DNA of 32,000 bases from Amoeboradix gromovi X-113 (Eukaryota; Fungi; Sanchytriomycota). Of the stretch, positions 1 to 32,000 are shown in pieces (the first letter of the stretch is position 1; every line of letters begins with the position of its first letter). Location: contig JADGIF010000005.1 of the NCBI GenBank assembly GCA_018985225.1, forward strand, positions 1 through 32,000, written 5' to 3'. The notes beneath the pieces were generated by a model. The model was not told the origin of the DNA, searched no databases, and saw nothing but the letters and a program-made list of their open reading frames with translations. The translations under genes and the position numbers were made by a program.

Positions 1-1130
1 CTCTATTTTATCTCTTGTACATGTCTTATTTACACAGTGGTCTCATCTTTTTCTTCATCGTAGACTTCTTTTTGGTACGTATATTTTGGTTGTTCTGTTG
101 TATACTTTTTAATAAATTGAAGTGAGTAGCCATCTGTTCTAATATTAGTAATATCCACTTCAATTTTACCGTTGGTATAACTACAGGCTTGTTTAAACAC
201 TTCTGAAAAAGAACAATTCATCATTTTTACAAAAGATTTCAAATCCATGGCAATTATATTGTCTTTAAAAGCACCCAATGGATAGAAGTAACCCACTCGT
301 ACTAGAAATCCTTGTTCTAGTGCATTTAACCATATCATCTCTTTCTAGGCATTGAAAGACATCTAATCGTTCCATTTTTCGACCAATTTCTGAGTGTTGA
401 TGAATGTATACTGTAACTGCTAGTTATTTCTTTAGAATTGATCCACCATTTGTGAAAAGGAAGAATATCGAGTATTTAAGCTGTTGCGAAAATCTGGAAT
501 AATGATGAAATTATATAAAAATGCATAAAAATTCGCGATAAATGATTTATTCAAGAAAACAATCGAGCTGATTTAATATCATTTTGGGTGACTGCCCCCA
601 GCTTGAAGAAATCAAGTCAAATGTTTCGACTTTTTATTGCAGTCTTTTATAGATTTCTTGGTTATATTTATCCTCCACATCATCGTTATTATCTGATTCT
701 GATAAATTATCTTCACCTTCAAGTTCTTCATACTGAGAAAATATCCATCTACATACATCAATATAGGATCCAGCGGTTATTCTTGCATTATTAAGTTCTC
801 TAAAACTATGCTGATCTTGTTCTGCACGAGATTGACTCAGTTCAACAAATCTAGCAGGTTACTACACTCTCGTCTATAAAATGAGTAAAGGAAAACTATA
901 GAATCTACGTATTCTTTTTTCATTTCTGAACACAAAACTTTTTTCGTTAGATCTAGAAAAAGTTCTCTTTCAAATAATTCAAATTTAGTTCTTTCTGTTA
1001 GCCAGTACATGTATAGATCTCCAAATCGGCTTCCCAAGGGTTCTGCACCTTTTATTGATAGCTAGCAAATACTTTATTTCATTCCGCCAATCTTTCCTGC
1101 CGTTTGTTCAAGATGAAAAAAGAATATAGA
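1..1130 (-). pseudogene. Decayed minus-strand ORF, possibly Fanzor1-like, interrupted by the IS607-like left-end fragment at 335-567 and running off the window edge
   Basis: Co-oriented frame fragments broken by stops and frameshifts: LAINKRCRTL/GSRFGDLYMYWL... (about 1065-837), ARFVELSQ...YKRLQ*KVETF...MILNQ (about 857-568) and ORF 30-338. The last contains NIRTDGYSLQF, similar to the TDG(V/Y)S motif that precedes RuvC-I in Fanzor1 proteins, followed by a charged linker. Identity is inferred from motif memory only. Confidence 0.3.
335..567 (-). mobile_element. IS607-like/Fanzor2 element, left-end fragment with TnpA N-terminal HTH remnant (copy 0)
   Basis: About 165 bp are highly similar to 14279-14441 and 31458-31620 and end sharply at the same base (+ strand ...TTCAAGAAAACAATCGAG). 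Minus-strand frame 451-335 reads KWWINSKEITSSYSIHSSTLRNWSKNGTIRCLSMPRKR*, matching the MerR-type winged-HTH pattern (TLRxW...G.I....P..KR) at the N-terminus of IS607 serine recombinases. Confidence 0.8.
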
Positions 1131-6700: not shown

Positions 6701-8987
6701 CAGACTGTTACGATTGAATGTTGCTCAACTGAAAGAGCTTACAAACGATGCAAATATCGTTTATTCTGCATTGCAGTCCTTGCCCAAATATATCGTTGAA
6801 ACTAAGCTGTTGCCTCTAACTACTAACTGGTATAAACTATTCTTGACCATTCAAAATGATTTCAAGCACGACCCATCTATCCATCTGCCCATTGAGTATA
6901 TTAACCTGATAGTAACTGATTCGTTGGGTACTAAAATCATTACAAGCTCTGAAATCTCAATCAAATCCAATGATACCGATTCTCTGATTACTAGCATGGT
7001 ATTTCAGTTAGACTACACGCCTTCAATCCTTTTGCTGCATTGCATTTCTAACAGGTGGTTTAATATTCAGTCACCGAGTATTGTGCAATACAACATTAGA
7101 CCCAGTTTATCACTTGATCCTATGGCTACAGTTAATGACAGTGAGATGCAGAAGCTGCTGTCTTTCCATGTAGCTCAGCCATTTAGCAAGATATTGGCCG
7201 TTCCATTGATTTACCATTATTCAATCATAGATATGCTAAGTGAATTGTACAGTGACTTAATTATAGTAATGCCTGTAGAGATGATCGGATTAGTAGATAG
7301 ATACAAGAATAGTGCAGCTGTAAAAGTATACACTGTGCAGGAGTATTTGCAAGGTATAAACACCAGCTGTACCGACACTAAGCACCTTGTAGCAATGCAT
7401 GTACAGAACCTGTCTGCCGATTATGAAGTACTGCTGATGCATGCGTCTACTTTAAGCAGCGTTACACTGCTAAGCACTCCAAATCCTAATTACAGAGACT
7501 ATTGTAGTTTGTTAAAAAGCGATCCTAAATATTCATTAAACTCGTGTAACTCAACAGCAATTAATCATTTAAAACGTATTAAAAACTACACTCATGGATT
7601 AATAGTGCATGAACATCCTTTGGAACTTGCAAAGCTGTTGATCGGAAGTAATGTTCATACAGATGCTGACTTTGATTCATCCATAAATCTTTGCAGCTCT
7701 AGTATAATTAACAAGTGCATAAACCACAATACACTAGTAATGGACCCATTAATGATTAGATCAGACTTGTTGATAATTTACAACCTTATTATCACCACTA
7801 ATACTGATGACATATATGTTGTAGTGCATCCTCACTTTACTTATGCGCTGTTTGTATCGTTCGATCATGTCGTGGTTGATTTGCCGGTCTTTGATGCAAT
7901 GCTTGTCAACAGAATGCAGCATTACAGCAGCAATATGACTGTAATTGGTAATAAACAGCATGTGGACAAAGCATTGCTAGGCTATCCAGTAGAGAGTAGA
8001 TTGCATCTAAATGCTGCGAGCTTACTGCGAACAGTAAATGCGAATGATGAGATATCAGTCGATTTGCTGGTTCAAACATTGAAGGGATCTTTCCTAGCGG
8101 CTAGACTACATAGGAACATGTACTATTACTGCGAAAATGTTAACGTATTTATTAGTGACCTAATTGATGATTTAATAAGAGACATGACGGAACTAGAGCT
8201 AATTAAAGACAACAAGTTAACAGCGTTAGGAATGATAATGAATAGCTACTCTTTATCATTTAATGACATGGACATACTAGTCATGAATGTAAATAATGGG
8301 ATAAACAGGTCTGACATGCTAGATATAATATGCAATATGGATTACAGTGATGTCGATTATAGCAGTAGCAAAGTAAAAGGACTCTTGAATAAGCATATGA
8401 ATAACATCCCATGTACTGCTGACACGTTGATGATATTGTACCACATAGAAAACAAGATACATGGACTGATAAGCGTGGCGAATTTCAAAGGCTTGTTAAG
8501 CGTTATGATTAGTGCCATAGAATTAATGCAAATGATTACGCAACAAGTAAACAATAGCAGTGCTGCTATTCAGCAACTGCCGTACTATGAGAAAATGAGA
8601 CTAGATGGCATAAGCAGTGTCTACGATCTAATGGAGCTAGAAGACGACTCAAGAGACTTGGTACTCGAGGAGCTCAGCGATTTAGAAAAGAGCAGTGTTG
8701 CCTATTTTGTGAACCACTATCCCAACATTGAAGTTTATATTACAAAAAAAGCCGCTGACATTGAAGTGAGTCTGGAAAGCGATGATTCTACCAAAATCAA
8801 TCTAAGCGAGTACTTTGAAAAGTACAATAGGTGGTGGATAATAGTGGGAAATGGAAATGAGATAATGCACGTGGAATTGGTTAAAATCCTTGATAACAAC
8901 ACCTTGGTGAAAATACCAATAATGAGTGGTAAATTGTACCTCATGTGCGACGGCTACATAGGATGCGATCAGGTGTACGATGTTTAA
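3792..8987 (+). CDS. BRR2: U5 snRNP 200-kDa Ski2-like RNA helicase Brr2 (shortened)
   Basis: 1731 aa with Brr2-typical N-terminal CKLPQGSFKRQRQGYEEIHIP, APTGAGKT, PLKALVQE, TPEKWD, DEIH, GLSATLPNY, QMIGRAGRP, a Sec63 unit and C-terminal LYLMCDGYIGCDQ. Confidence 0.93.
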   Translation: MQDDNVNSGKARSIVGKINMTEMGSRAQVLTSHPKSQSVRLPQPTGNILDNCILQYNPKTDIQHQYYSHLLQYLLQKLGDLPSNDLHELAYNFINSFDTTYKEIFNDDLKHYESIKQIIHYLHDAPVDVPEEMNVDVLLDNENDNNQIIAEPVSDEEDHSDIDIQDYVDHLNSLLSNFSREVQESTFELINRCSDNPMMLEKELMQLFEFEHTDIVMFILENQLMLLRQLNSNKNETDDKLEPTQIIAFDDYKFKDRGHFQANKNCKLPQGSFKRQRQGYEEIHIPLFSNDKKNEPLMPISDLPEWCQICFKGVQHLNLIQSLTFKSSFNSNDNMLVSAPTGAGKTNISLLAMLRLIGSFRSNNNISKEDFKIIYVAPLKALVQELVFNFTQKLAPLGLVVSELTGDVNMTRQEMMNSNLIITTPEKWDVITRKGMDASTINTVKLLIVDEIHLLHDSRGPVLESIIVRSFNHPIRIIGLSATLPNYKDVGAFLKCPSSNVYYFDHSYRPCPLSQEFIGITERRFKRLELINNILYEKVMEDAGKYQVIIFVHSRKDTLKTAQLLLEMFISNNTLGKLFSNIQGSINVLQSISDQCENKKLKSIIPHGFGIHHAGLSRNDRTLIEDLFADGHLQVLVATSTLAVGINLPSHTCIIKGTKVYNPSLGEYEEIGLSSVIQMIGRAGRPGYDVFGRGVIITEYHELPYYLSILNSQFPIESQLFLQIENVLNAEIVLGNIMNINDACEYIKQTYLYTRMTTDPATYKQSKNIDDILLFIINVAHSAFKLLHDNKMIIYSYPNCYSTELGLIASYYYISMSNMSVYYNQIKSHFNIPQLLQVFANSGEFKYIPVRKEEELELKRLSGIVPIPVPTDSNSSNSNKIIILLQCYISNHSLSGFAIQSDLTFIAQSATRLFKCMSEICLYFKWYSPFVSAMNLYKMTLNHSWDLFPLNQIHYLPNAAVNKLNNTSINRLLRLNVAQLKELTNDANIVYSALQSLPKYIVETKLLPLTTNWYKLFLTIQNDFKHDPSIHLPIEYINLIVTDSLGTKIITSSEISIKSNDTDSLITSMVFQLDYTPSILLLHCISNRWFNIQSPSIVQYNIRPSLSLDPMATVNDSEMQKLLSFHVAQPFSKILAVPLIYHYSIIDMLSELYSDLIIVMPVEMIGLVDRYKNSAAVKVYTVQEYLQGINTSCTDTKHLVAMHVQNLSADYEVLLMHASTLSSVTLLSTPNPNYRDYCSLLKSDPKYSLNSCNSTAINHLKRIKNYTHGLIVHEHPLELAKLLIGSNVHTDADFDSSINLCSSSIINKCINHNTLVMDPLMIRSDLLIIYNLIITTNTDDIYVVVHPHFTYALFVSFDHVVVDLPVFDAMLVNRMQHYSSNMTVIGNKQHVDKALLGYPVESRLHLNAASLLRTVNANDEISVDLLVQTLKGSFLAARLHRNMYYYCENVNVFISDLIDDLIRDMTELELIKDNKLTALGMIMNSYSLSFNDMDILVMNVNNGINRSDMLDIICNMDYSDVDYSSSKVKGLLNKHMNNIPCTADTLMILYHIENKIHGLISVANFKGLLSVMISAIELMQMITQQVNNSSAAIQQLPYYEKMRLDGISSVYDLMELEDDSRDLVLEELSDLEKSSVAYFVNHYPNIEVYITKKAADIEVSLESDDSTKINLSEYFEKYNRWWIIVGNGNEIMHVELVKILDNNTLVKIPIMSGKLYLMCDGYIGCDQVYDV

Positions 8988-9046
8988 TTAATAAATAGAT
9001 TTCAATTAACAAAACGTGAGGTATTAGGCTAAATATATTTATTCAT

Positions 9047-9589
9047 TTAATCGGATTTGAGGCGACTACCAGATGCCATATAATATGTGTTGGGGGCCGC
9101 TGAGGACAGCAGCTGAATCCCAATAATAAAAGCCACGATGAGACCAATTAATGTGAAAATAAAGAATGAAAAAGAAGAAGAAACGTCAATAAAATCATCA
9201 TTTGCAGATTTGGAATCATCGCTGTCACGCTTTACAAGAGATATAGAGGGACGCAACAATATATTGTTGCGCGAGTCAAAAGAAGAATCAGAATCAATAT
9301 TGACAATTACAACCTTTTTTCCAAGACCAAATTGTTTGGGACTAACTTTAGGAGAATGGTCTTGATGTAGTATTGGAATGTTGTACTTGTCGGCTAGATT
9401 AATAGTAACCTCCAAGAAATCATCTACTGCAAACGGAGCTTGAATACCTTTTGATGTTGGCTTTTCGGAATAGTATATTACCAAAACGCTAGAATCAGGA
9501 CCCTTGCAATTGTTATTTTGGAAGAAGGCGCCATAGTAGCAAAGCACTTGTTTCCATGAAATATTGGAATTGGGGATAACAAACTGCAT
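9047..9589 (-). CDS. Membrane protein with a single C-terminal TM helix, possibly a V-ATPase accessory Voa1/Ac45 (BIG1-like) protein
   Basis: 180-aa ORF. KR-D then ...FSFFIFTLIGLIVAFIIGIQLLSS... resembles the Ac45/Voa1 C-terminal TM region. The start is uncertain because CTAAC..ATGCAG around the ATG could be an intron 3' end. Confidence 0.4.
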   Translation of the reverse strand: MQFVIPNSNISWKQVLCYYGAFFQNNNCKGPDSSVLVIYYSEKPTSKGIQAPFAVDDFLEVTINLADKYNIPILHQDHSPKVSPKQFGLGKKVVIVNIDSDSSFDSRNNILLRPSISLVKRDSDDSKSANDDFIDVSSSFSFFIFTLIGLIVAFIIGIQLLSSAAPNTYYMASGSRLKSD

Positions 9590-10467
9590 AGGTTAGAAAA
9601 ATTTATTTTATTTGAATTGCACTCATTAAGTTCTTTCTTCTTTCCAACTGGCGCAGATTCTTTCGGCCTTCTAAATATTCCTTGTAAGATATTATACTGC
9701 CCCAAGCTAATCCATTTAAAAATGGGGATCCTATTATATTAAACAACTCGGACATGTTCTGAAAAGCAAACTAGGAGAAATTGCGGGATGGAGAGTTCTA
9801 CCTATTTGAGATATTTTTATAAATTTTATTTAGTTTTTGTAAAATACCCACTTCAGGGTCGTTTCTCGCCATCGATTGGGCCAGGTGGCTGTTGTCGCTG
9901 CTACCAAAATAAACTATGACCTCCTTAACGATTGTCCTAGTCTCCCAGAAAGTCAAGAGTTACCACTGAGAAACTGATTAAGACTTTGAGGTCCATGATA
10001 AGAAAGTGTGTCAAGCGTAGACAACTATAAAACTATAGAAAGATGATCAGTTGAGAAGTGAAGTTCGTGAAATCACTATAGATGGTTTATTGAAACAGCA
10101 TAACCTGCTTTAGCATCAACAATACGAAATAGGTTTGTTCTTTGTAACCTAAAATAACTAGTGATTGCAAACGCATCATATTTTTCCGTTGTTGAAGTAT
10201 TTATTAGGTGTTTCTTTAGAAGTGGAGCCATTCGACCGATGAAAAAAAATAAGATAGAGTTTTATGCAGATGAAAGTGTCTGCAAAAAGAAGCATAGGCA
10301 CAATATAGCCATGTAATCGTGATAAATGGTTAATTCAGTTGAAGTCGATAGCCGGTTAACAGTGTACTCATCGATTAGTTAGTGTATAATCTCACAGTAT
10401 GGCATTGTGAGTCCTAAACATCTAAGGGCATTAAATATACTTACTAAGACACTTTTATGAAATTAAT

Positions 10468-13320: not shown

Positions 13321-13837
13321 GAGACATCAAATATAAAAACTGGACTAACTTTCTATAACAACTTGGAACATTATTTCAGCTTTATTAGTTTTATGGATTT
13401 AAGAGGCGAGTGGACATTCAGCTAGTTGACGAGTATAAAAGGAAAATAAACAACTTTTTGTATCGAAATTTCAAAAATAAATATTCTGTACAGCTATTCT
13501 CTTACTCTTTCATCCAATCTTTATTTCAAATAAACCTCTGATTCATAATAGGGTATATTTTCATTTAATCTTGCCCGTAAATAGAGACCCTTCCTAATAA
13601 AGTTATGGCCAAGAGAATGCAAAAGCTTTCATACACCAGCAAATCAAAGAAATGTAGTGTCTGTGAGAATGAAATAGACAAGAGTAATGATGTTAGTATA
13701 ACATTACAAAATGACTCTAGAAAAGAATGCCGTCTCGGAAAATTGGTATAATAGAAGATCTTTTATTAATGAGAGCATTTCCTCCGTATGGTGCACCTTT
13801 AAAAACGACTTAGTCTAGTTTTTATATTTGGTGTCCC
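13321..13837. mobile_element. Non-autonomous TIR element (MITE), copy A
   Basis: About 30-bp terminal inverted repeats GAGACATCAAATATAAAAACTGGACTAAC / GGGACACCAAATATAAAAACTAGACTAAG. Both arms match 23756-24162 in reverse orientation. No clean TSD is visible. Confidence 0.85.
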
Positions 13838-14278
13838 AAGCGATCCAAAATCCGAACTCTCTCGTTAAAAGTCCAGATTTCCGAGAAAATCGAGAATTTC
13901 CACAGAGAAACTAATGCTAGATCTCCGTTAGAGTGATCGCCCACGCTTTCACTACCCTGAGGCGGGATTGAATAAGGATGCAGACACTTGATGTATATAT
14001 TCCTTGCTGCCATATGGTCTCTATCTCCTAATGACACTTTGTACAAGTGTAGGTGTCTCAATTGGTTTTCTTTAGAGTACCACGCCTTGTACATGTCTGA
14101 CTAGTAAATGATTCATTGCATTCGACCATCGTCTTTCCTCTTTGCTTACACTTGAATTTTAAGCGTTGCTTGAATGCGTAATGGGACATCGTAGCCATGT
14201 TTCTTCCGAATTGCTCAACAATCTACTTATCATTTGACTAGTATTGAACGATGATGAGAATATAAGATCATATGTCTT
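13822..14278 (-). pseudogene. Fanzor2/TnpB C-terminal fragment (RuvC-II region, Zn finger, RuvC-III)
   Basis: Manual translation across two frameshifts: KTYDLIFSSSFNTSQMISRLL / GRNMATMSHYAFKQRLKFKCKQRGKTMVECNESFTSQTCTRRGTLKKTN*DTYTCTKCH* / DRDHMAARNIYIK. SHY.FKQRL, NE.FTS.TC and DRD..AARNI are hallmark Fanzor2/IS607-TnpB motifs. Confidence 0.9.
13841..13982 (-). ncRNA. Predicted Fanzor omegaRNA: scaffold 13982-13861 plus candidate guide AGAGTTCGGATTTTGGATCG
   Basis: Conserved in three copies, with several predicted stems. Conservation stops exactly after CGAG. The 5' boundary is approximate and expression is not shown. Confidence 0.7.
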
Positions 14279-14441
14279 TGTATGCTGTACCTGCTAGTTA
14301 TTTCTTTACAATTGATTTACCGTTTGTGAAAATGAAGAATGTCGAGTATTTGAGCTATTAGAAAAATCTGGAAAAGTCTTGAAATTATACAAAAATACAT
14401 ACAAATTCGCGATAAATGATTTATTCAAGAAAACAATCGAG
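13861..14441 (-). mobile_element. IS607-like/Fanzor2 non-autonomous element, both ends present (copy 1, 581 bp)
   Basis: Left end CTCGATTGTTTTC (14441 downward) and right end GACTTTTAACGAG (ending 13861) are defined by homology break points with the other copies. An internal deletion joins the tnpA start to the Fanzor 3' part at about 14279. Confidence 0.9.
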
Positions 14442-14502
14442 CTAGCCACTTTGATTTACCACTTTTATTTCTAGAATTCGCGAACACTATTTCGTGTAAG
14501 AG

Positions 14503-18333: not shown

Positions 18334-20454
18334 TTAAAATGTAGAGTATATCGCATTAGAGGCTTTGCTGCTATCAGTGCCCTTGCCCAATTTTGATAAA
18401 AGCGTTCTTCGGAATGGCGCAAAGTGCAAGACTGTAAATAATAATAAAGTGCTTGCAAAGAATCTCACAATCACAGAAAAGGTGATATCCCAGAGCTTGG
18501 GAGTATAATATTTTGCAACTTTGTCTACCGATTGAACTGTAAAAACACTAGTTGCTTTCGTATGCTCATATGACAATATTGTTGAGTTGATAGTAGCCGA
18601 CCTTCTTCTCAAACTTTTCTTTGACTCCAACAAAACCTCTAAAGTACTGTCATAAAGAGTAGTGTCAAGTTCAAGGCTTTTTCCAATGTTTGTCACATCT
18701 TCAGTAGCTTCACTTTGGGGGACTGAATTGGCGTACGTTTTAGATAATGATTTCTTAATCTCTGCTAAAGTAGAGCTGGTCGCATTCTCAGCAGAAGCAA
18801 TATAAAAATCGAGAGTAGTGACAAACACTACAGTAGATTCAGTGGATTCCGTAGATTCCGTAGATTCCGTTGATTCAGTAGATTCCGTAGATTCCGTAGA
18901 TTCAGTAGAAACGATAGAAGAAATATAAGCAACAGTACTGGTAGAAACTGGCGCACTAAAGAGATTATCTTTGACACACTTTGCAAAATCATTGCTGTTC
19001 GTAGACTTCAAAAGTGGATTTTCTGAGATGTTGCAAGCTACTAAATTACTGGTGCTGTTGAAAAAGATGTCGGTGATAGAGTTGTTCTGAACATACAAAT
19101 ACTCAGGATTCAACAACCATAGCGTGCCGCTAAAGTTGTTATCATATAGAATCAACGACTTAATGGCAGAAGGAATGCTTGGAAGGTCTCCAGTGAAAGT
19201 ATTGACAGATAAATCCAAGTAAGTCATGTTGACAGGTATTGCGAAGAGTAGACCAGAGAGCTGATTGTATCCGACATCAAAAGTTTCCATAGAGATAGGC
19301 AAAGTCGATGGGAGAGTGCCTGTCAAGGAATTATGACTGATGTTGAGAAAAGATAAGCCTGTTGGCAGAGTGGCTGGAAAATAACCAGTGATGCCGTTCA
19401 TTTCCAACTTCAATGTCGTGAGTAAGTCAGGTATACTGGCACTCTGTATTACACCATTTAAACCATAGCCTTTCCAGTTGATCTGCACTACACGACCTGA
19501 AGAGCCCTGGTCACATGTGACTCCGGAAGCAACACAGCAGTTGCCATAAATCACCCCCATGTTGCTAGGATTCACCTCTTGCATCCGCAATGCTCTGGCT
19601 AGGTCTATCACTTTTGGACAATCGGTGGAGATAGAGTAAGCACCATTCTTATTACATTTTGCAAGGGTTGGTGAGCTTATCTGTGCTAGTATAGGGTTGC
19701 TGGACAAATCACAGTCAAACCAAGGGTTGGTGTCGGTACCAATGACAACGCTGGTTACGTAGGTACCTGGCATATGTATTAGCTTTGGTGCAGCCAAATA
19801 TAATGTGCCATTGAACCTGTTGGTTGGATAAGCATAGTTCAAATAAACTTCTGAAATGCCGCTCGGAAAAGCTGGCAATGGTCCCGTCAAGTAGTTTCTA
19901 TGCACTTCAAAGAACTGTAATCCAGCTGGAAGGGTTTTTGGCAACCAGCCAGTTAAAAGGTTATTCCTTATATAGTACGCGTAGATATTAGGAGGTAGAG
20001 TCTGGTGCATCTGACCAGTCAATGAATTTATGATGCAGCTGAATGTAACAGTGCTGGTAGGAAGAGTAGGGTACATATTACCACTTAAAGAGTTAAAACT
20101 GAGGTTTATAGTTTGCAGCGAGTCAGGCAACATCGGGATTCCCCCAGTTATTGAGTTTGAGGACAAATCTAACACTGTTAGCGCGTTTGGGACTGCTGTC
20201 CCCAAGATAGTTCCATCTAATCCCCAACCTGACCAGGTTATCTGAGCTACGCGCCCACTTACACATGTCACACCGTTTGCAGTGCAGCAATCAGAGTTTA
20301 TGAGTGCCATGACAGCAGGCTGCTTTGTATTTACGTGCAGTCCCGTGGCAAGGTTGATGACATTTGGACAGTCAACCGATACGGCGAAGGTTGTTTTTAC
20401 GAACCAAATCATCAATAACATCCAAAGAGAAGTCATCGCGCTCGTGTTTGACAT
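18334..20454 (-). CDS. Cell-surface receptor-like LRR protein (signal peptide, two Cys-capped LRR modules, S/T stalk, C-terminal TM)
   Basis: 706 aa with a hydrophobic N-terminus. Module caps are DCPNVINLA...DCCTANGVTC and DCPKVIDLA...NCCVASGVTC, followed by plant-type LxxLxLxxNxLxGxxP repeats, STE repeats and a TM near the C-terminus. Confidence 0.85.
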   Translation of the reverse strand: MSNTSAMTSLWMLLMIWFVKTTFAVSVDCPNVINLATGLHVNTKQPAVMALINSDCCTANGVTCVSGRVAQITWSGWGLDGTILGTAVPNALTVLDLSSNSITGGIPMLPDSLQTINLSFNSLSGNMYPTLPTSTVTFSCIINSLTGQMHQTLPPNIYAYYIRNNLLTGWLPKTLPAGLQFFEVHRNYLTGPLPAFPSGISEVYLNYAYPTNRFNGTLYLAAPKLIHMPGTYVTSVVIGTDTNPWFDCDLSSNPILAQISSPTLAKCNKNGAYSISTDCPKVIDLARALRMQEVNPSNMGVIYGNCCVASGVTCDQGSSGRVVQINWKGYGLNGVIQSASIPDLLTTLKLEMNGITGYFPATLPTGLSFLNISHNSLTGTLPSTLPISMETFDVGYNQLSGLLFAIPVNMTYLDLSVNTFTGDLPSIPSAIKSLILYDNNFSGTLWLLNPEYLYVQNNSITDIFFNSTSNLVACNISENPLLKSTNSNDFAKCVKDNLFSAPVSTSTVAYISSIVSTESTESTESTESTESTESTESTESTVVFVTTLDFYIASAENATSSTLAEIKKSLSKTYANSVPQSEATEDVTNIGKSLELDTTLYDSTLEVLLESKKSLRRRSATINSTILSYEHTKATSVFTVQSVDKVAKYYTPKLWDITFSVIVRFFASTLLLFTVLHFAPFRRTLLSKLGKGTDSSKASNAIYSTF
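18832..18909 (-). repeat. 9-bp coding tandem repeat (about 8.7 units) encoding (STE)n
   Basis: + strand unit GTAGATTC(C/A) repeated with synonymous variants. Confidence 0.95.
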
Positions 20455-20806
20455 TCTTTGTTTTATATTTAGGCCGTTGGCAGATTCGAATTATGTTCTG
20501 ACACTAAAAAGAACCGCTGCCCAAATAATTGGAAATGGAAGATAGAGGAGCACGATTGCATCATGAAATCGCAATATCATTTTTTCGTTCATGCTCTTCC
20601 TACGGTTGATGCTGTAATAGCAATCTTGTGACACAAATATACTGAGATCCAGGAACGAGCTTGAAGCATAAATATGAGCCTAATATTAAAACCTGCTATT
20701 AAGCTTTGAATTCAATATATTTAACATTTGTATGGATTCACGCTCGTTGGAAATTTACCATAAGATTTACTTAATTTGAGTTTCATTCCTCATGGATCTA
20801 GCACGC

Positions 20807-20900
20807 CTCGTGAAAAGTCCTGATGAGCTGTAGATGCACATATCTCTAGTAAAATAGCTAGGAACCTGCTGTACTAATGTCAAGTAAATTTATTGTACAG
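20807..20900 (-). mobile_element. Diverged right end/omegaRNA of the IS607-like Fanzor family (copy 4, right end)
   Basis: Minus strand ATCAGGACTTTTCACGAG (20824-20807) matches the family terminus ATCAGGACTTTTAACGAG at 17/18 positions. Similarity to the scaffold further upstream is weak. Confidence 0.6.
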
Positions 20901-21453
20901 TCCAATAGAATTCTGTTGCTGAAACTTCCATTCAGTTAATGTCCAGATTAGACTTCATAGAGCTCTTGCTTGATATTGTGATCTTAAAAGTCGGTATAGG
21001 AAATAGCTCCGTCAGTTAAAAGACCTGGGTTAGCTATTCATTCTTCACCTAATGTTGACTTCCACGGTGAAATGAATAGACAATCTTAGGTCTTGGCGTA
21101 CTGCAAAAAGGATGCGAAATGTCATAAATATGTCAATGAACTAAGCTTTTATCAAAAAATTTGATTTTAGGTCAAGACGAGGAAATTTATTCTAATTCTC
21201 CTTCAAATGCCATTAGTTGAACAAAAACATAAACGGCGTAAAATTCACTTCCCGTGGTTTAATTTGATCAGCGCGATGATAGGCACCACATCTGTTAATT
21301 ATATGCTGGTGTTTGTGTACAAATTACACTGGATGGTTGATAATGTGCATTAATGCAGTGGTTAGAAAGACTACTCAATTCTTAGCATGGCTTCTCTAGA
21401 TTTCTTTCCATGCCCTCCAGGTATTCATTGCATAATAGATGGTGTAGCGGGTT

Positions 21454-21543
21454 TCATATTGTGCATGTGTATGTCTCCAAATTGGTTTTATTAGTAAACC
21501 GTTCATAGTATTCTAGAAATGTCTTTCCTCTTTATTAGCACTC
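21454..21543 (-). pseudogene. Fanzor2 fragment (copy 4 coding remnant)
   Basis: EC**RGKTFLEYYERFTNKTNLETYTCTI* aligns to KCKQRGKTMVECNESFTSQT[CTRCATLKKT]NLETYTCTKC from copies 1 and 2 with a 10-codon deletion. Same strand as the right end at 20807. Confidence 0.75.
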
Positions 21544-21679
21544 CATATATTTGTGCACCATCTGAATATCTTGTTTTATGAAGTTTGAAACGTTTAGAAT
21601 GCGATTATTGGAGCGATGTATCTCGTTTAATCACGAATGCGTCATGCGATCCAAAACACAATAAAAATAATTAGCAAGT

Positions 21680-23474: not shown

Positions 23475-23755
23475 GTGGGAAAAACTCTTCAAACTTTTAA
23501 AACAAATGTCTCAAAATGCTAAAGTAATTGCTTTGGTACTCATTATTTGAGTTAAAAATTCTTGATATTCTTCTTGTTTGCCAGTCAGAACTTTTGTCAT
23601 TGCTCAGTAGATTTTTTACGACTTTGAGATTGTTAAAACAAGATTCACACCTCGATCGACGAGAACATCATAGTGCAGATCTTAGAACCTTAAGAGATCG
23701 CCGAATGCTATTGTGCTTGCCACCATTATCATTTCAACTTTAGCATTATTGAAAT

Positions 23756-24162
23756 GGGACACCAAATTTAAAAACTAGACTAACTCGTTTTTAAAGAAGG
23801 TGCACCATCGGAGGAAATGCTATCATTAATAAAAGATCTTCTATTATACCAGTTTTCTTTCATTGATTGTATTCCCTCTTCAAAATAATACTAGATATGA
23901 GGTCTTTGAGCATCTAAGCAAAAGGTGCATTTTCTTACTCTTATATATTTCTTTGAAGTGTAATAGTGATGTTTTATTTGAAATAAAGATTGGATGAAAG
24001 AGTAAGAGAACAGCTGTACAGAATATTTATTTTCCTTTTATACTCGTCAACTCCGCAACTAGCTGAATGTCCACTCGCCTCTTGAATCCATAAAATAATA
24101 AAGCTGAAATAATGATTCAAACTTTATCAGAAAGTTAGTCCAGTTTTTATATTTGATGTCCC
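23756..24162. mobile_element. Non-autonomous TIR element (MITE), copy B, with apparent AAAT target-site duplication
   Basis: AAAT|GGGACACCAAATTTAAAAACTAGACTAAC ... GTTAGTCCAGTTTTTATATTTGATGTCCC|AAAT. Homologous to 13321-13837. Confidence 0.88.
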
Positions 24163-24564
24163 AAATGTTCTTTAAGCAGGGTGTACAACTGATTCTGTAT
24201 TTAGAGCACACTTAAGGAAACTGCAAGGCCTACGTTGAATGCAAATGTCTGAAATAAATCAGGTTTCACGTTTCTGGAGTGTAGATAACCTGTGTAGATG
24301 ACACTTAAGCATAGTTGCATTCTCATATTTCATATTTGTCGTCACTATCTTCACATAACAACTTCCCTGCGCATCATATTAGTTTTTCTTGCATTCGCAA
24401 GTGTTTCCTATGATGTTGTTTGACGTAGCACTCTGGTGATAATTGTTAGATATGGCCTTGAGTAATTTTTCTGTGTTTTGCCGCCTCTAGTTAATTCATA
24501 GAGGATGTAGATAGTATCGGAAAAGAAAACTCACTTTAATGGGAGGATTGACTAGAAATAGTAT

Positions 24565-25251: not shown

Positions 25252-25390
25252 GCAATCTGAGACTCAGATCACCACGTTGAATCAGTACTTTTTATGGATG
25301 CGCATTGCGGACTTCTCAAACGTTTTGTTCTTTAATATCCTTTTTGCGTACTATACTTCTTGTAGGCTTTAACAACTTCATCCGTTTTTA

Positions 25391-25536
25391 TGCATCCTTG
25401 TTCAATCCCGCCTCGGGGTAGTGAAAGCATGAGCAATCACTATAACAGATTAACTAGCACAGCTAGTTTCTCTGTGGAAATTCTCCATTTCCTCGGAAAT
25501 CAGGACTTTTAACGAGGTTACAACAAGTGTTATTGA
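25391..25536 (+). ncRNA. Stand-alone Fanzor omegaRNA copy (copy 3): scaffold 25391-25516 plus candidate guide GTTACAACAAGTGTTATTGA
   Basis: Clear homologue of 13982-13861 and 31187-31066 ending CAGGACTTTTAACGAG at 25516. No Fanzor Zn-finger/RuvC coding sequence lies upstream. Confidence 0.75.
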
Positions 25537-25843
25537 ATAAACAAATTTATCGAGAACACGTGTCTTTTTTATATGTATACTCTTCTTTTCTAGATACTCC
25601 AATGGTATAAAAAGAGGATCCTCGCTGTTCATCAATGGCAAGTAGCTCTAAACCTCGCAATCCTGAATACGTCAGATCTGAAGAAAAAACTAATAGATAT
25701 AGTAAACACTCATCGATATTGAGAAATTGGTGTGGGTAGAGATCATGAGCCACAGCGGTTTATCAGAAATCAGCGATTTCTATGGTGGGCATCTAAACTT
25801 TTGCACGTCGAATCAATTCTTAACTTTCTTAGATTGTTATTTA

Positions 25844-30850: not shown

Positions 30851-31045
30851 GCTCTTCAATAATCAATAAACTTTCCAAAACAGAAGTTTCAAAAATTATG
30901 GCAGCACTCGATTTCAATTGCACAAACCAACTATAGTGATTAAACGAGGCATGCCTATTCAATATGCTCTTTATAAACTTAACTAGCTTTATGAAACAAT
31001 ATACTAGAAACCGGTCTAAAAATGAACTGGAAGTGCAAATAACAG

Positions 31046-31187
31046 GGAAAGACATTGGTAGCCTACTCGTTAAAAGTCCTGATTTCCGAGAAAATCGAGA
31101 ATTTCCACAGAGCAGCTAATGGTAGATCTCCGTTACAGTGACTGCTCACGCTTTCACTACCCTGAGGCGGGATTGAATAAGGATACA
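31046..31187 (-). ncRNA. Predicted Fanzor omegaRNA: scaffold 31187-31066 plus candidate guide TAGGCTACCAATGTCTTTCC
   Basis: Near-identical to the copy 1 scaffold, with conservation ending at CGAG. Confidence 0.7.
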
Positions 31188-31416
31188 TATACTTGATGTA
31201 TATGTTCCTTGCTGCCATATGATCTCTGTCTATCTTCAAATGACACTTTGTACAAGTGTAGGTTTCTAAATTAGTTTTCTTTAGAGTAGCACACCTCGTA
31301 CATGCCATTGAATTTGTTCCTTGGTGCCATGTGGTCCATTTCGACTTCCAAATGACACTATATACATGAATAGCTCTCCAAATTGGTTTTCTTAAGGGTG
31401 CCACATATTGTACATG
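31063..31416 (-). pseudogene. Fanzor2 Zn finger/RuvC-III fragments in tandem
   Basis: 31416-31316: CTICGTLKKTNLESYSCI*CHLEVEMDHMAPRN. 31304-31204: CTRCATLKKTNLETYTCTKCHLKIDRDHMAARN, continuing in frame to the element end. Confidence 0.88.
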
Positions 31417-31620
31417 GTATCGAATTTCCATGCTTGGACCAGCTTATCAGTCTGAGACGAATGTATGCTGTACCTGCTAGTTATTTCTTTAGAATCGATT
31501 TACCATTTGCGAAAAGAATATCGAGTGTTTAGGCTATTAGAAAAATCTGGAAAAGTCTTGAAATTATACAAAAATGCATACAGATTCGCGATAAATGATA
31601 TATTCAAGAAAACAATCGAG
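31066..31620 (-). mobile_element. IS607-like/Fanzor2 non-autonomous element, both ends present (copy 2, 555 bp)
   Basis: Same left and right termini as copy 1. It carries the tnpA HTH remnant (...SKEITSRYSIHSS/LISWSKHG), two tandem Zn-finger/RuvC-III segments and the omegaRNA. Confidence 0.9.
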
Positions 31621-32000
31621 GTCTTTACACCAAATTGTGTCCTCAACTAGCCCTTGTAAGTGCAATAAATTCGTAAAATTTATAACGACTACTTTCTAGT
31701 GAATTTTTAGATGTTTGATAAACCAAAGTCTCTTTAACTACCCACAAAGCGCATCGAATATGTGTATTAAAAGAAATCTGTTAATTAGAAATTTGTGTTC
31801 CTAAAGTAGCAGCGTTATTAACGCTTAGCTAAACTCGATTAACTTCAAAATGTGCAAGATGACTAGTGCTAAATTCTGATCATAAATTTATTGTCTTCGT
31901 AAAATTTCATCATAAATTGAGCAGTACACCCTTTTGTTATGTTTGTATAAATAAAATAGCTTTTTACACACATTTTGCAAATCAACGTCGACCGACTGCA

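Follow-up and report, generated by a model that had tools for sequence, protein, structure and literature searches.

Dispersed repeats lie between the genes of a 32,000-nucleotide stretch of fungal DNA (the window, meaning the whole stretch that was analysed), and they raise the question of whether an IS607 element carrying the RNA-guided nuclease Fanzor2 has multiplied inside a eukaryotic nucleus. The 2013 survey of such sequences (PMC3673617) did not settle whether IS607 transposition takes place in eukaryotic nuclei. The window is gene-dense, has about 36% GC, and carries fungal genes for HisG, a Brr2-like helicase, a BRCT protein, LTA4H and a Cdc6-like protein. Its HisG is present in EukProt, the nearest named relative being that of Sanchytrium tribonematis (79%), and the host is almost certainly Amoeboradix gromovi, a sanchytrid parasite of algae. 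The assembly of this species measures 48.7 Mb raw and 10.5 Mb clean, with 36.3% GC; its DNA was obtained by whole-genome amplification, and heavy decontamination was required (PMC8371127). Transposons are not mentioned in the sanchytrid genome paper (PMC8371127), and our literature search found no paper that links Fanzor with sanchytrids.

We favour, with a probability of roughly 0.85, a reading in which the copies are non-autonomous deletion derivatives of a eukaryotic IS607 element (IS607EU, encoding the serine recombinase TnpA and Fanzor2) which a giant virus probably brought into the A. gromovi lineage, where it rose to about 1,000 copies.

Repeat copies in the window and the anatomy of copy B

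The original prediction described at least five remnants that share both ends and the coding pieces between them. The dispersed repeats themselves are real: self-comparison of the window gave blastn pairs 82-91% identical (E down to 1e-87), and a left-end 21-mer and a right-end 19-mer each occur three times at up to three mismatches, against no occurrence in 100 shuffles. Not every copy carries every part, however. Clean left ends are confined to copies A (567), B (14441) and E (31620), and right ends to B, D and E; copy C keeps a degenerate right-end remnant of 18 nt (20807). At least seven remnants (A-G) can be recognized, together about 2.95 kb or about 9% of the window; all are intergenic, with none of the seven overlapping a host gene, and they are 65-92% alike overall with the GC content of the host.

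Copy B (13858-14443, minus strand) consists of a left end, the start of tnpA, a broken 3′ quarter of Fanzor2 and a right end with a predicted omegaRNA, and it was confirmed as an internally deleted, non-autonomous eukaryotic IS607 element. Its left junction carries AG, the presumed target-derived crossover dinucleotide (14442-14443, minus strand; predicted family target 5′-CAG), followed by the left end proper (14320-14441, minus strand), which is 88-91% identical to those of copies A and E. Two sets of candidate TnpA sites, both AT-rich, lie in this left end: three imperfect direct repeats of 8 nt at a spacing of 10 bp, and a stretch of 11 nt that recurs inverted in the right end. The tnpA 5′ remnant, the start of a MerR-type helix-turn-helix (HTH; 14279-14319, minus strand), is in register with positions 445-338 of copy A and spans about 13 codons, compared with 36 codons in copy A. 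An internal deletion near 14281 joins the start of tnpA to the broken 3′ portion of Fanzor2 (13951-14281, minus strand), which corresponds to about residues 440-551 of the intact 583-aa protein of the relative L006 (tblastn E 4e-17, 58% identity; E 6e-20 against P0136). Both peptide motifs SHYAFKQRL and NESFTSQTC were located in copy B, the RuvC-II Glu codon is at 14114-14112 and the RuvC-III DRD at 14025-14017. The frame is damaged by the loss of one Cys from the Zn finger (the first pair reads CTRR), by two stops and by a frameshift near 14022, ahead of DRDHMAARNI. The right end with its predicted omegaRNA scaffold (13858-13966, minus strand) terminates in AG, where 67 contigs diverge, and has a one-base indel at its very end.

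The other copies preserve different parts. Copy A (296-569, minus strand) has AG, a left end and the longest tnpA HTH remnant (445-338), without recognizable Fanzor sequence; a possible right-end stub at about 315-296 was spotted by eye only. Past copy A, a 102-aa ORF (30-338, minus strand) looked Fanzor1-like by eye (an IxTDG motif) and was rejected, as it found no Pfam, BLAST or atlas support. Copy C (20804-21555, minus strand) is putatively a single copy composed of a highly degenerate Fanzor2 fragment (21555-21459) and a right-end remnant (20822-20804). Copy F (9916-10352, minus strand) is an old, diverged copy with both ends, the right one terminating in GGAG; its left and right ends scored 13.0 and 17.7 bits in nhmmer, against at most 5.0 bits in shuffles. 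Copy D (25389-25519, plus strand) is a right end only, with the best-folding predicted omegaRNA, and is directly followed by copy G (25520-25733, plus strand), a diverged left end with a tnpA HTH remnant that stands above the shuffled background (nhmmer E 5e-5; TnpA tblastn E 0.004). The right end of D thus abuts the older left end of G in the same orientation, as either a nested insertion or a head-to-tail junction.

Copy E (31063-31622, minus strand) has both ends, a short tnpA start, two Zn-finger/RuvC-III segments and a predicted omegaRNA (31171-31063). Its CxxC..CxxC and DRD are intact and its RuvC-II Glu is absent. The two segments lie in tandem (31427-31309 and 31315-31197) and are 74% alike, which suggests template switching between copies. 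At 30936-31065 (plus strand), the flank of copy E looks like a Fanzor2 segment in advanced decay, 68% alike with 21507-21634 (E 0.002), and copy E may have inserted into an older family copy. This flank, together with 26376-26255 and 1164-1006, was a weak candidate and was left uncounted.

None of the window copies encodes anything functional, and they have the look of fossils that differ in age; a spread of identities between about 90% and about 65% means that the family was active over a long period or more than once. In a syntenic contig from a related sanchytrid (L001), in which no family copies were found, 58 bp separate the BRCT gene from hisG, versus 1,788 bp in the window, where the gap holds copy B and an element with terminal inverted repeats (TIRs). 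A 706-aa secreted LRR protein of the window (18334-20454, minus strand), with a 9-bp tandem repeat tract, has no counterpart at the syntenic position of that contig.

The nuclease, the recombinase and their intact relatives

The assignment to Fanzor2 and IS607 was upheld by three matches: the ORF at 31063-31431 (copy E) hits Pfam PF07282 above the cut-off, among PDB structures a family member matches the mimivirus Fanzor2 9b0l best, and the left part of copy A matches the IS607 TnpA of the relative L002 (E 8e-10). The RuvC-II Glu, said at the outset to have moved to just before the Zn finger as the E of NESFTS, does lie six residues ahead of the C4 finger, which is followed by the RuvC-III RD; NESFTSQTC and DRD occur in copy B and in the EukProt copies, and E, C and D are invariant in the protein alignment. 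The tnpA HTH remnants of copies A, B, E and G match the TnpA of L002 and L006, and the catalytic domain of TnpA is deleted from all window copies. The element order of left end, tnpA, Fanzor2 and right end is seen in B, E and P0125.

Two further expectations of the original prediction fared less well. RuvC-I (DPG) is absent throughout the window, being deleted from every copy; it is present in the relatives L006 (residue 361), L002 and L003. An intact master copy in the genome has so far not been retrieved, as three protein searches gave no intact A. gromovi tnpA or Fanzor2; the two of them aimed at full-length proteins were restricted by word and length and covered the best 120 matches.

The closest intact relative is L006, a JGI metagenome contig with a complete 1.9-kb element (102-1988) in which tnpA (229-873) and Fanzor2 (233-1984) occupy overlapping frames. 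Its TnpA comprises HTH and Resolvase domains and its 583-aa Fanzor2 has DPG, E and D; copy E and L006 share 72% DNA identity over 130 bp. The same overlap of tnpA (HTH plus Resolvase) and Fanzor2 is found in L002, while L003 represents a version without tnpA. L006 is a natural element with readable ends and a compact predicted RNA of about 117 nt. In agreement with the Fanzor2 assignment, a quick tree (112 columns, without Fanzor1 rows and with copy B read through with X at its breaks) placed the A. gromovi copies as sister to L006, inside metagenomic and viral Fanzor2 and away from bacterial rows. Supports were 88-98, with 93 for the clade of L006 and A. gromovi, which includes one long-branch row.

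Relatives in GTDB are distant (about 29% identity). The neighbours of the L002 element include a PCNA gene, whose look-alikes are largely from Nucleocytoviricota, and S74 and ricin-lectin genes, and the related L004 adjoins an NCLDV capsid gene. From gene content we infer that L002, L003 and L006 are probably viral, giant-virus-like contigs, and a giant virus is the likely vector. Scans of viral contigs with the family peptide, the L006 protein and the TIR pattern returned nothing close, only distant giant-virus Fanzor2s. A metagenome scan with the right-end pattern gave a single match (L005), which lies in a phage gene and was set aside as chance.

Junctions, target site and right-end RNA

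Junctions were read from contigs of the genome's own sequencing run aligned to copy B, and at both ends they run into unrelated sequence, as had been claimed for the right one. At the left junction contigs align through AG (14443-14442), after which 56 contigs continue into unrelated flanks; the base after AG is by consensus C on the element strand, in a read consensus of low agreement. At the right junction 67 contigs leave copy B at 13861, and their consensus goes on with GAG on the element strand. Four of the five EukProt copies that read through the right end continue F-N-E-E (chance about 5e-6), and GGAG is the right terminus of copy F, L002, L003, L006 and L009. On these three lines of evidence the family right end is ..AACGAGGAG (ending ..GAGGAG), so that the right end as first given was 3 nt short; a boundary misplaced in this way also misplaces the start of the guide by 3 nt.

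AG is thus found at both junctions, with no longer target duplication, and one shared 2-bp core is the IS607 junction pattern (PMC6188088). The core differs from the typical GG, which according to a review is the core dinucleotide in most IS607 elements (PMC13565253). A central GC crossover within the junction palindrome was ruled out, since right flanks lack an initial C. The readable junctions in the window are TCAG (copy A), CTAG and AGAC, and L006 and L007, the same element (99.9% identical) in different flanks, both show flanks ending in CAG. From these few readable junctions and the low-agreement read consensus, and by analogy with ISXfa1, the target and target-adjacent motif (TAM) is predicted to be 5′-CAG, with the filled right end reading GAG. 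Terminal complementarity extends over only 3-4 bp, and window comparisons revealed no end-to-end inverted repeat.

In the model of the right-end RNA, the loop of a 3-bp hairpin forms a pseudoknot by pairing with the five bases that precede the terminal AG, and three further hairpins lie internally. The last 100-117 nt fold well in copy D, L002, L003 and L006 (z -2.2 to -4.8), whereas in copies B and E the pseudoknot pairs are broken and the fold is no better than shuffles (z -0.5 and -0.25). Three of the eight pseudoknot pairs have double changes, across four independent sequence types; the paired fraction and covariation score were reached by none of 500 shuffles, and no slid register matches them. 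The alignment comprises six related rows, and the structure was derived from these same rows, so support for the pseudoknot is moderate, as the rows are few and related. With that moderate confidence, the modelled fold would be the pseudoknot described for TnpB and Fanzor2 RNAs, and it would link the right end to the intact relatives. A search of Rfam with the right-end RNA matched no family.

These features both resemble and depart from known systems. With IS607EU and viral Fanzor2 (ISvMimi/ApmFz2, PDB 9b0l; PMC3627910; PMC10530073) the family shares, in its relatives, a tnpA that overlaps a DPG-bearing Fanzor2, as well as a Glu placed six residues ahead of the Zn finger and the lack of TIRs; a right-end pseudoknot beside the guide is likewise known from viral Fanzor2 RNA (PMC11832414). 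In contrast, the viral systems have GG/GGG where we find an AG core and a predicted CAG TAM, the ApmFz2 scaffold measures about 205 nt against about 100-117 nt here, and viral IS607 is present in few viral copies, against about 1,000 nuclear deletion derivatives. The predicted CAG TAM is not among the published Fanzor2 TAMs (GGG, CCG, TAG/TTTA, TA). A precedent for an AG-ending target in an IS607 context, with self-protection by a right end unlike the TAM, comes from ISXfa1 and from bacterial IS607 TnpB with an AGGAG TAM (ISFba1, RAGATH-18; PMC11061315), although the ISFba1/RAGATH-18 TnpB belongs to another nuclease clade, with another RNA family and a 5-nt TAM. Fanzor ghost loci (PMC10432273) are similarly nuclease-less copies that keep their ends and omegaRNA region, but the A. 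gromovi copies differ in keeping broken tnpA and Fanzor2 pieces and IS607-type ends. IS607-borne Fanzor2, fungal Fanzor2 and ghost omegaRNA loci are therefore known already; the novelty lies in the extent of nuclear amplification, in an AG core with a predicted CAG target, and in the intact relative.

Amplification, rival explanations and the neighbouring TIR family

The claim of a high-copy family is supported genome-wide. Fourteen close protein matches, all of them A. gromovi pseudo-ORFs in EukProt, lie on 14 contigs, and the flanks and depth of the read contigs concur. The 32 kb contain three clean ends of each kind, left and right, a density that would amount to about 1,000 over 10.5 Mb. 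When the depth of the contigs is summed, which does not measure copy number, both ends reach about 150,000-200,000 and the unique flank 19; the middle of the element, at about 3,000, lies about 50-fold below the ends, in agreement with many copies from which this part is mostly gone. The 2,768 contigs of the read-contig comparison include the neighbouring TIR family. Together these figures suggest family copies on the order of 1,000 in the genome.

Published Fanzor copies number up to 122, and eukaryotic genomes hold 1-22 IS607-like sequences each, with transposition unproven (PMC3673617). The sequences in that survey are alike in their fragmentary tnpA/orfB pieces in fungal and protist nuclei, in the Zn-ribbon end being the part most often kept, and in a patchy distribution with a virus as the likely vector. 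Many of them were segmental duplications, and transposition was not concluded; in the A. gromovi family, by contrast, the ends are sharp, the flanks unrelated and the target motif constant, which speaks for genuine transposition at a much greater scale. That a reduced fungal genome of 10.5 Mb holds some 1,000 copies sharing one target motif is strong circumstantial evidence that IS607 elements transpose in eukaryotic nuclei, and the family is a large natural sample of junctions.

The most likely mechanism can be drawn from bacterial IS607 work (summarized in PMC13565253). TnpA supplied in trans would bind the subterminal repeats, as in IS607 biology, and excise a circle by a 2-bp crossover at AG; the circle would then insert at 5′-CAG with no duplication beyond the AG core. 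Fanzor2, loaded with the right-end RNA and guided by the flank that follows ..GGAG, would cut the emptied donor site (TAM CAG) and spare the filled right end (GAG). Repair from the sister copy would restore the element and give a net gain, and where repair is interrupted, a wide variety of internal deletions could result, each with both ends preserved.

The TIR element beside copy B (13321-13838) and a second copy (23755-24164) belong to a separate, non-autonomous family with TIRs of about 30 bp (GGGACAC..), a 4-bp AAAT duplication at the second copy and, in the first, a decayed Zn-finger-like frame (13581-13748). This family, presumably Sola-like by its ends and target-site duplication, is about as abundant in reads as the IS607 family.

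Its abundance bears on one of the rival explanations, in which a eukaryotic cut-and-paste element of the Fanzor2* type captured Fanzor2, and a DDE transposase, such as the one belonging to the TIR family, left AG behind as a 2-bp target duplication. Formally, an AG core presents the same picture as a 2-bp target duplication, AG stands on both sides, and Fanzor2* elements with TIRs and target-site duplications exist (10.1101/2023.08.09.552727). We nevertheless regard such a capture as very unlikely: Fanzor2* has TIRs, a 4-5 bp duplication and no tnpA, whereas the A. gromovi copies have a tnpA HTH inside the left end and TIR-like complementarity of 3-4 bp at most, a serine recombinase is encoded by intact relatives that share their ends, and the TIR family has other ends and a 4-bp duplication. 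Least credible of all is that the copies arose from segmental duplication, contamination or amplification chimeras in a single-cell assembly. The whole-genome amplification and heavy decontamination of this genome (PMC8371127) lend it some plausibility, as do the many earlier eukaryotic IS607 copies explained by duplication (PMC3673617), but it is already largely refuted by sharp boundaries with unrelated flanks, by copies 65-92% alike that are flanked by fungal genes in synteny with a sanchytrid contig of independent origin, and by a GC content like that of the host, with no close bacterial relative in GTDB (about 29% identity).

The abundance of right ends invites another thought, that the mini-elements are ghost omegaRNA loci maintained and expressed as a guide RNA library for an intact host or viral Fanzor2. 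Right ends are the most abundant part of the element, copy D folds strongly (z -4.8), and ghost omegaRNAs of Fanzor1 are functional (PMC10432273). Against this, the pseudoknot pairs of B and E are broken and their folds stay at shuffle level (z -0.5 and -0.25), left ends come close to right ends in abundance, which is what transposition substrates should show, and no guide taken from a flank matches a second place in the window (best 12/15), which leaves a maintained library improbable. Hardly less doubtful is a version in which the family is still live, an intact tnpA and Fanzor2 helper, located where the genome is unassembled or carried by a giant virus that infects sanchytrids, mobilizing the mini-elements in trans while the roughly 1,000 right ends serve as an expressed guide RNA library for a CAG-TAM nuclease.

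The TIR family, too, is shared with virus-like DNA. The 30-bp TIR recurs at 85-97% identity in L002 (13034-13327), L003 (339-436 and 8742-8771) and L009 (35-67), and in L003 it closes a Fanzor1-like C-terminal frame (8760-9104, minus strand); a tblastn comparison of the TIR-element peptide with this Fanzor1-like tail gave no match. As the TIR and the Fanzor2 family both occur in the L002, L003 and L009 contigs, two Fanzor-type families are common to the fungus and to virus-like contigs. This hints at an unknown virus of sanchytrids, and suggests that the contigs represent either an unknown giant virus of these fungi or endogenous viral regions of a related fungus.

Two protein entries deserve a brief mention. 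P0129, an A. gromovi predicted ORF in EukProt, runs from an element right end in frame into an RRM/RG-rich host protein, and many A. gromovi EukProt entries may be element-derived mis-annotations. P0253, an IS607 TnpA homologue (38% to the L002 TnpA), comes from the EukProt entry for Heterococcus DN1, a xanthophyte like the parasitized alga.
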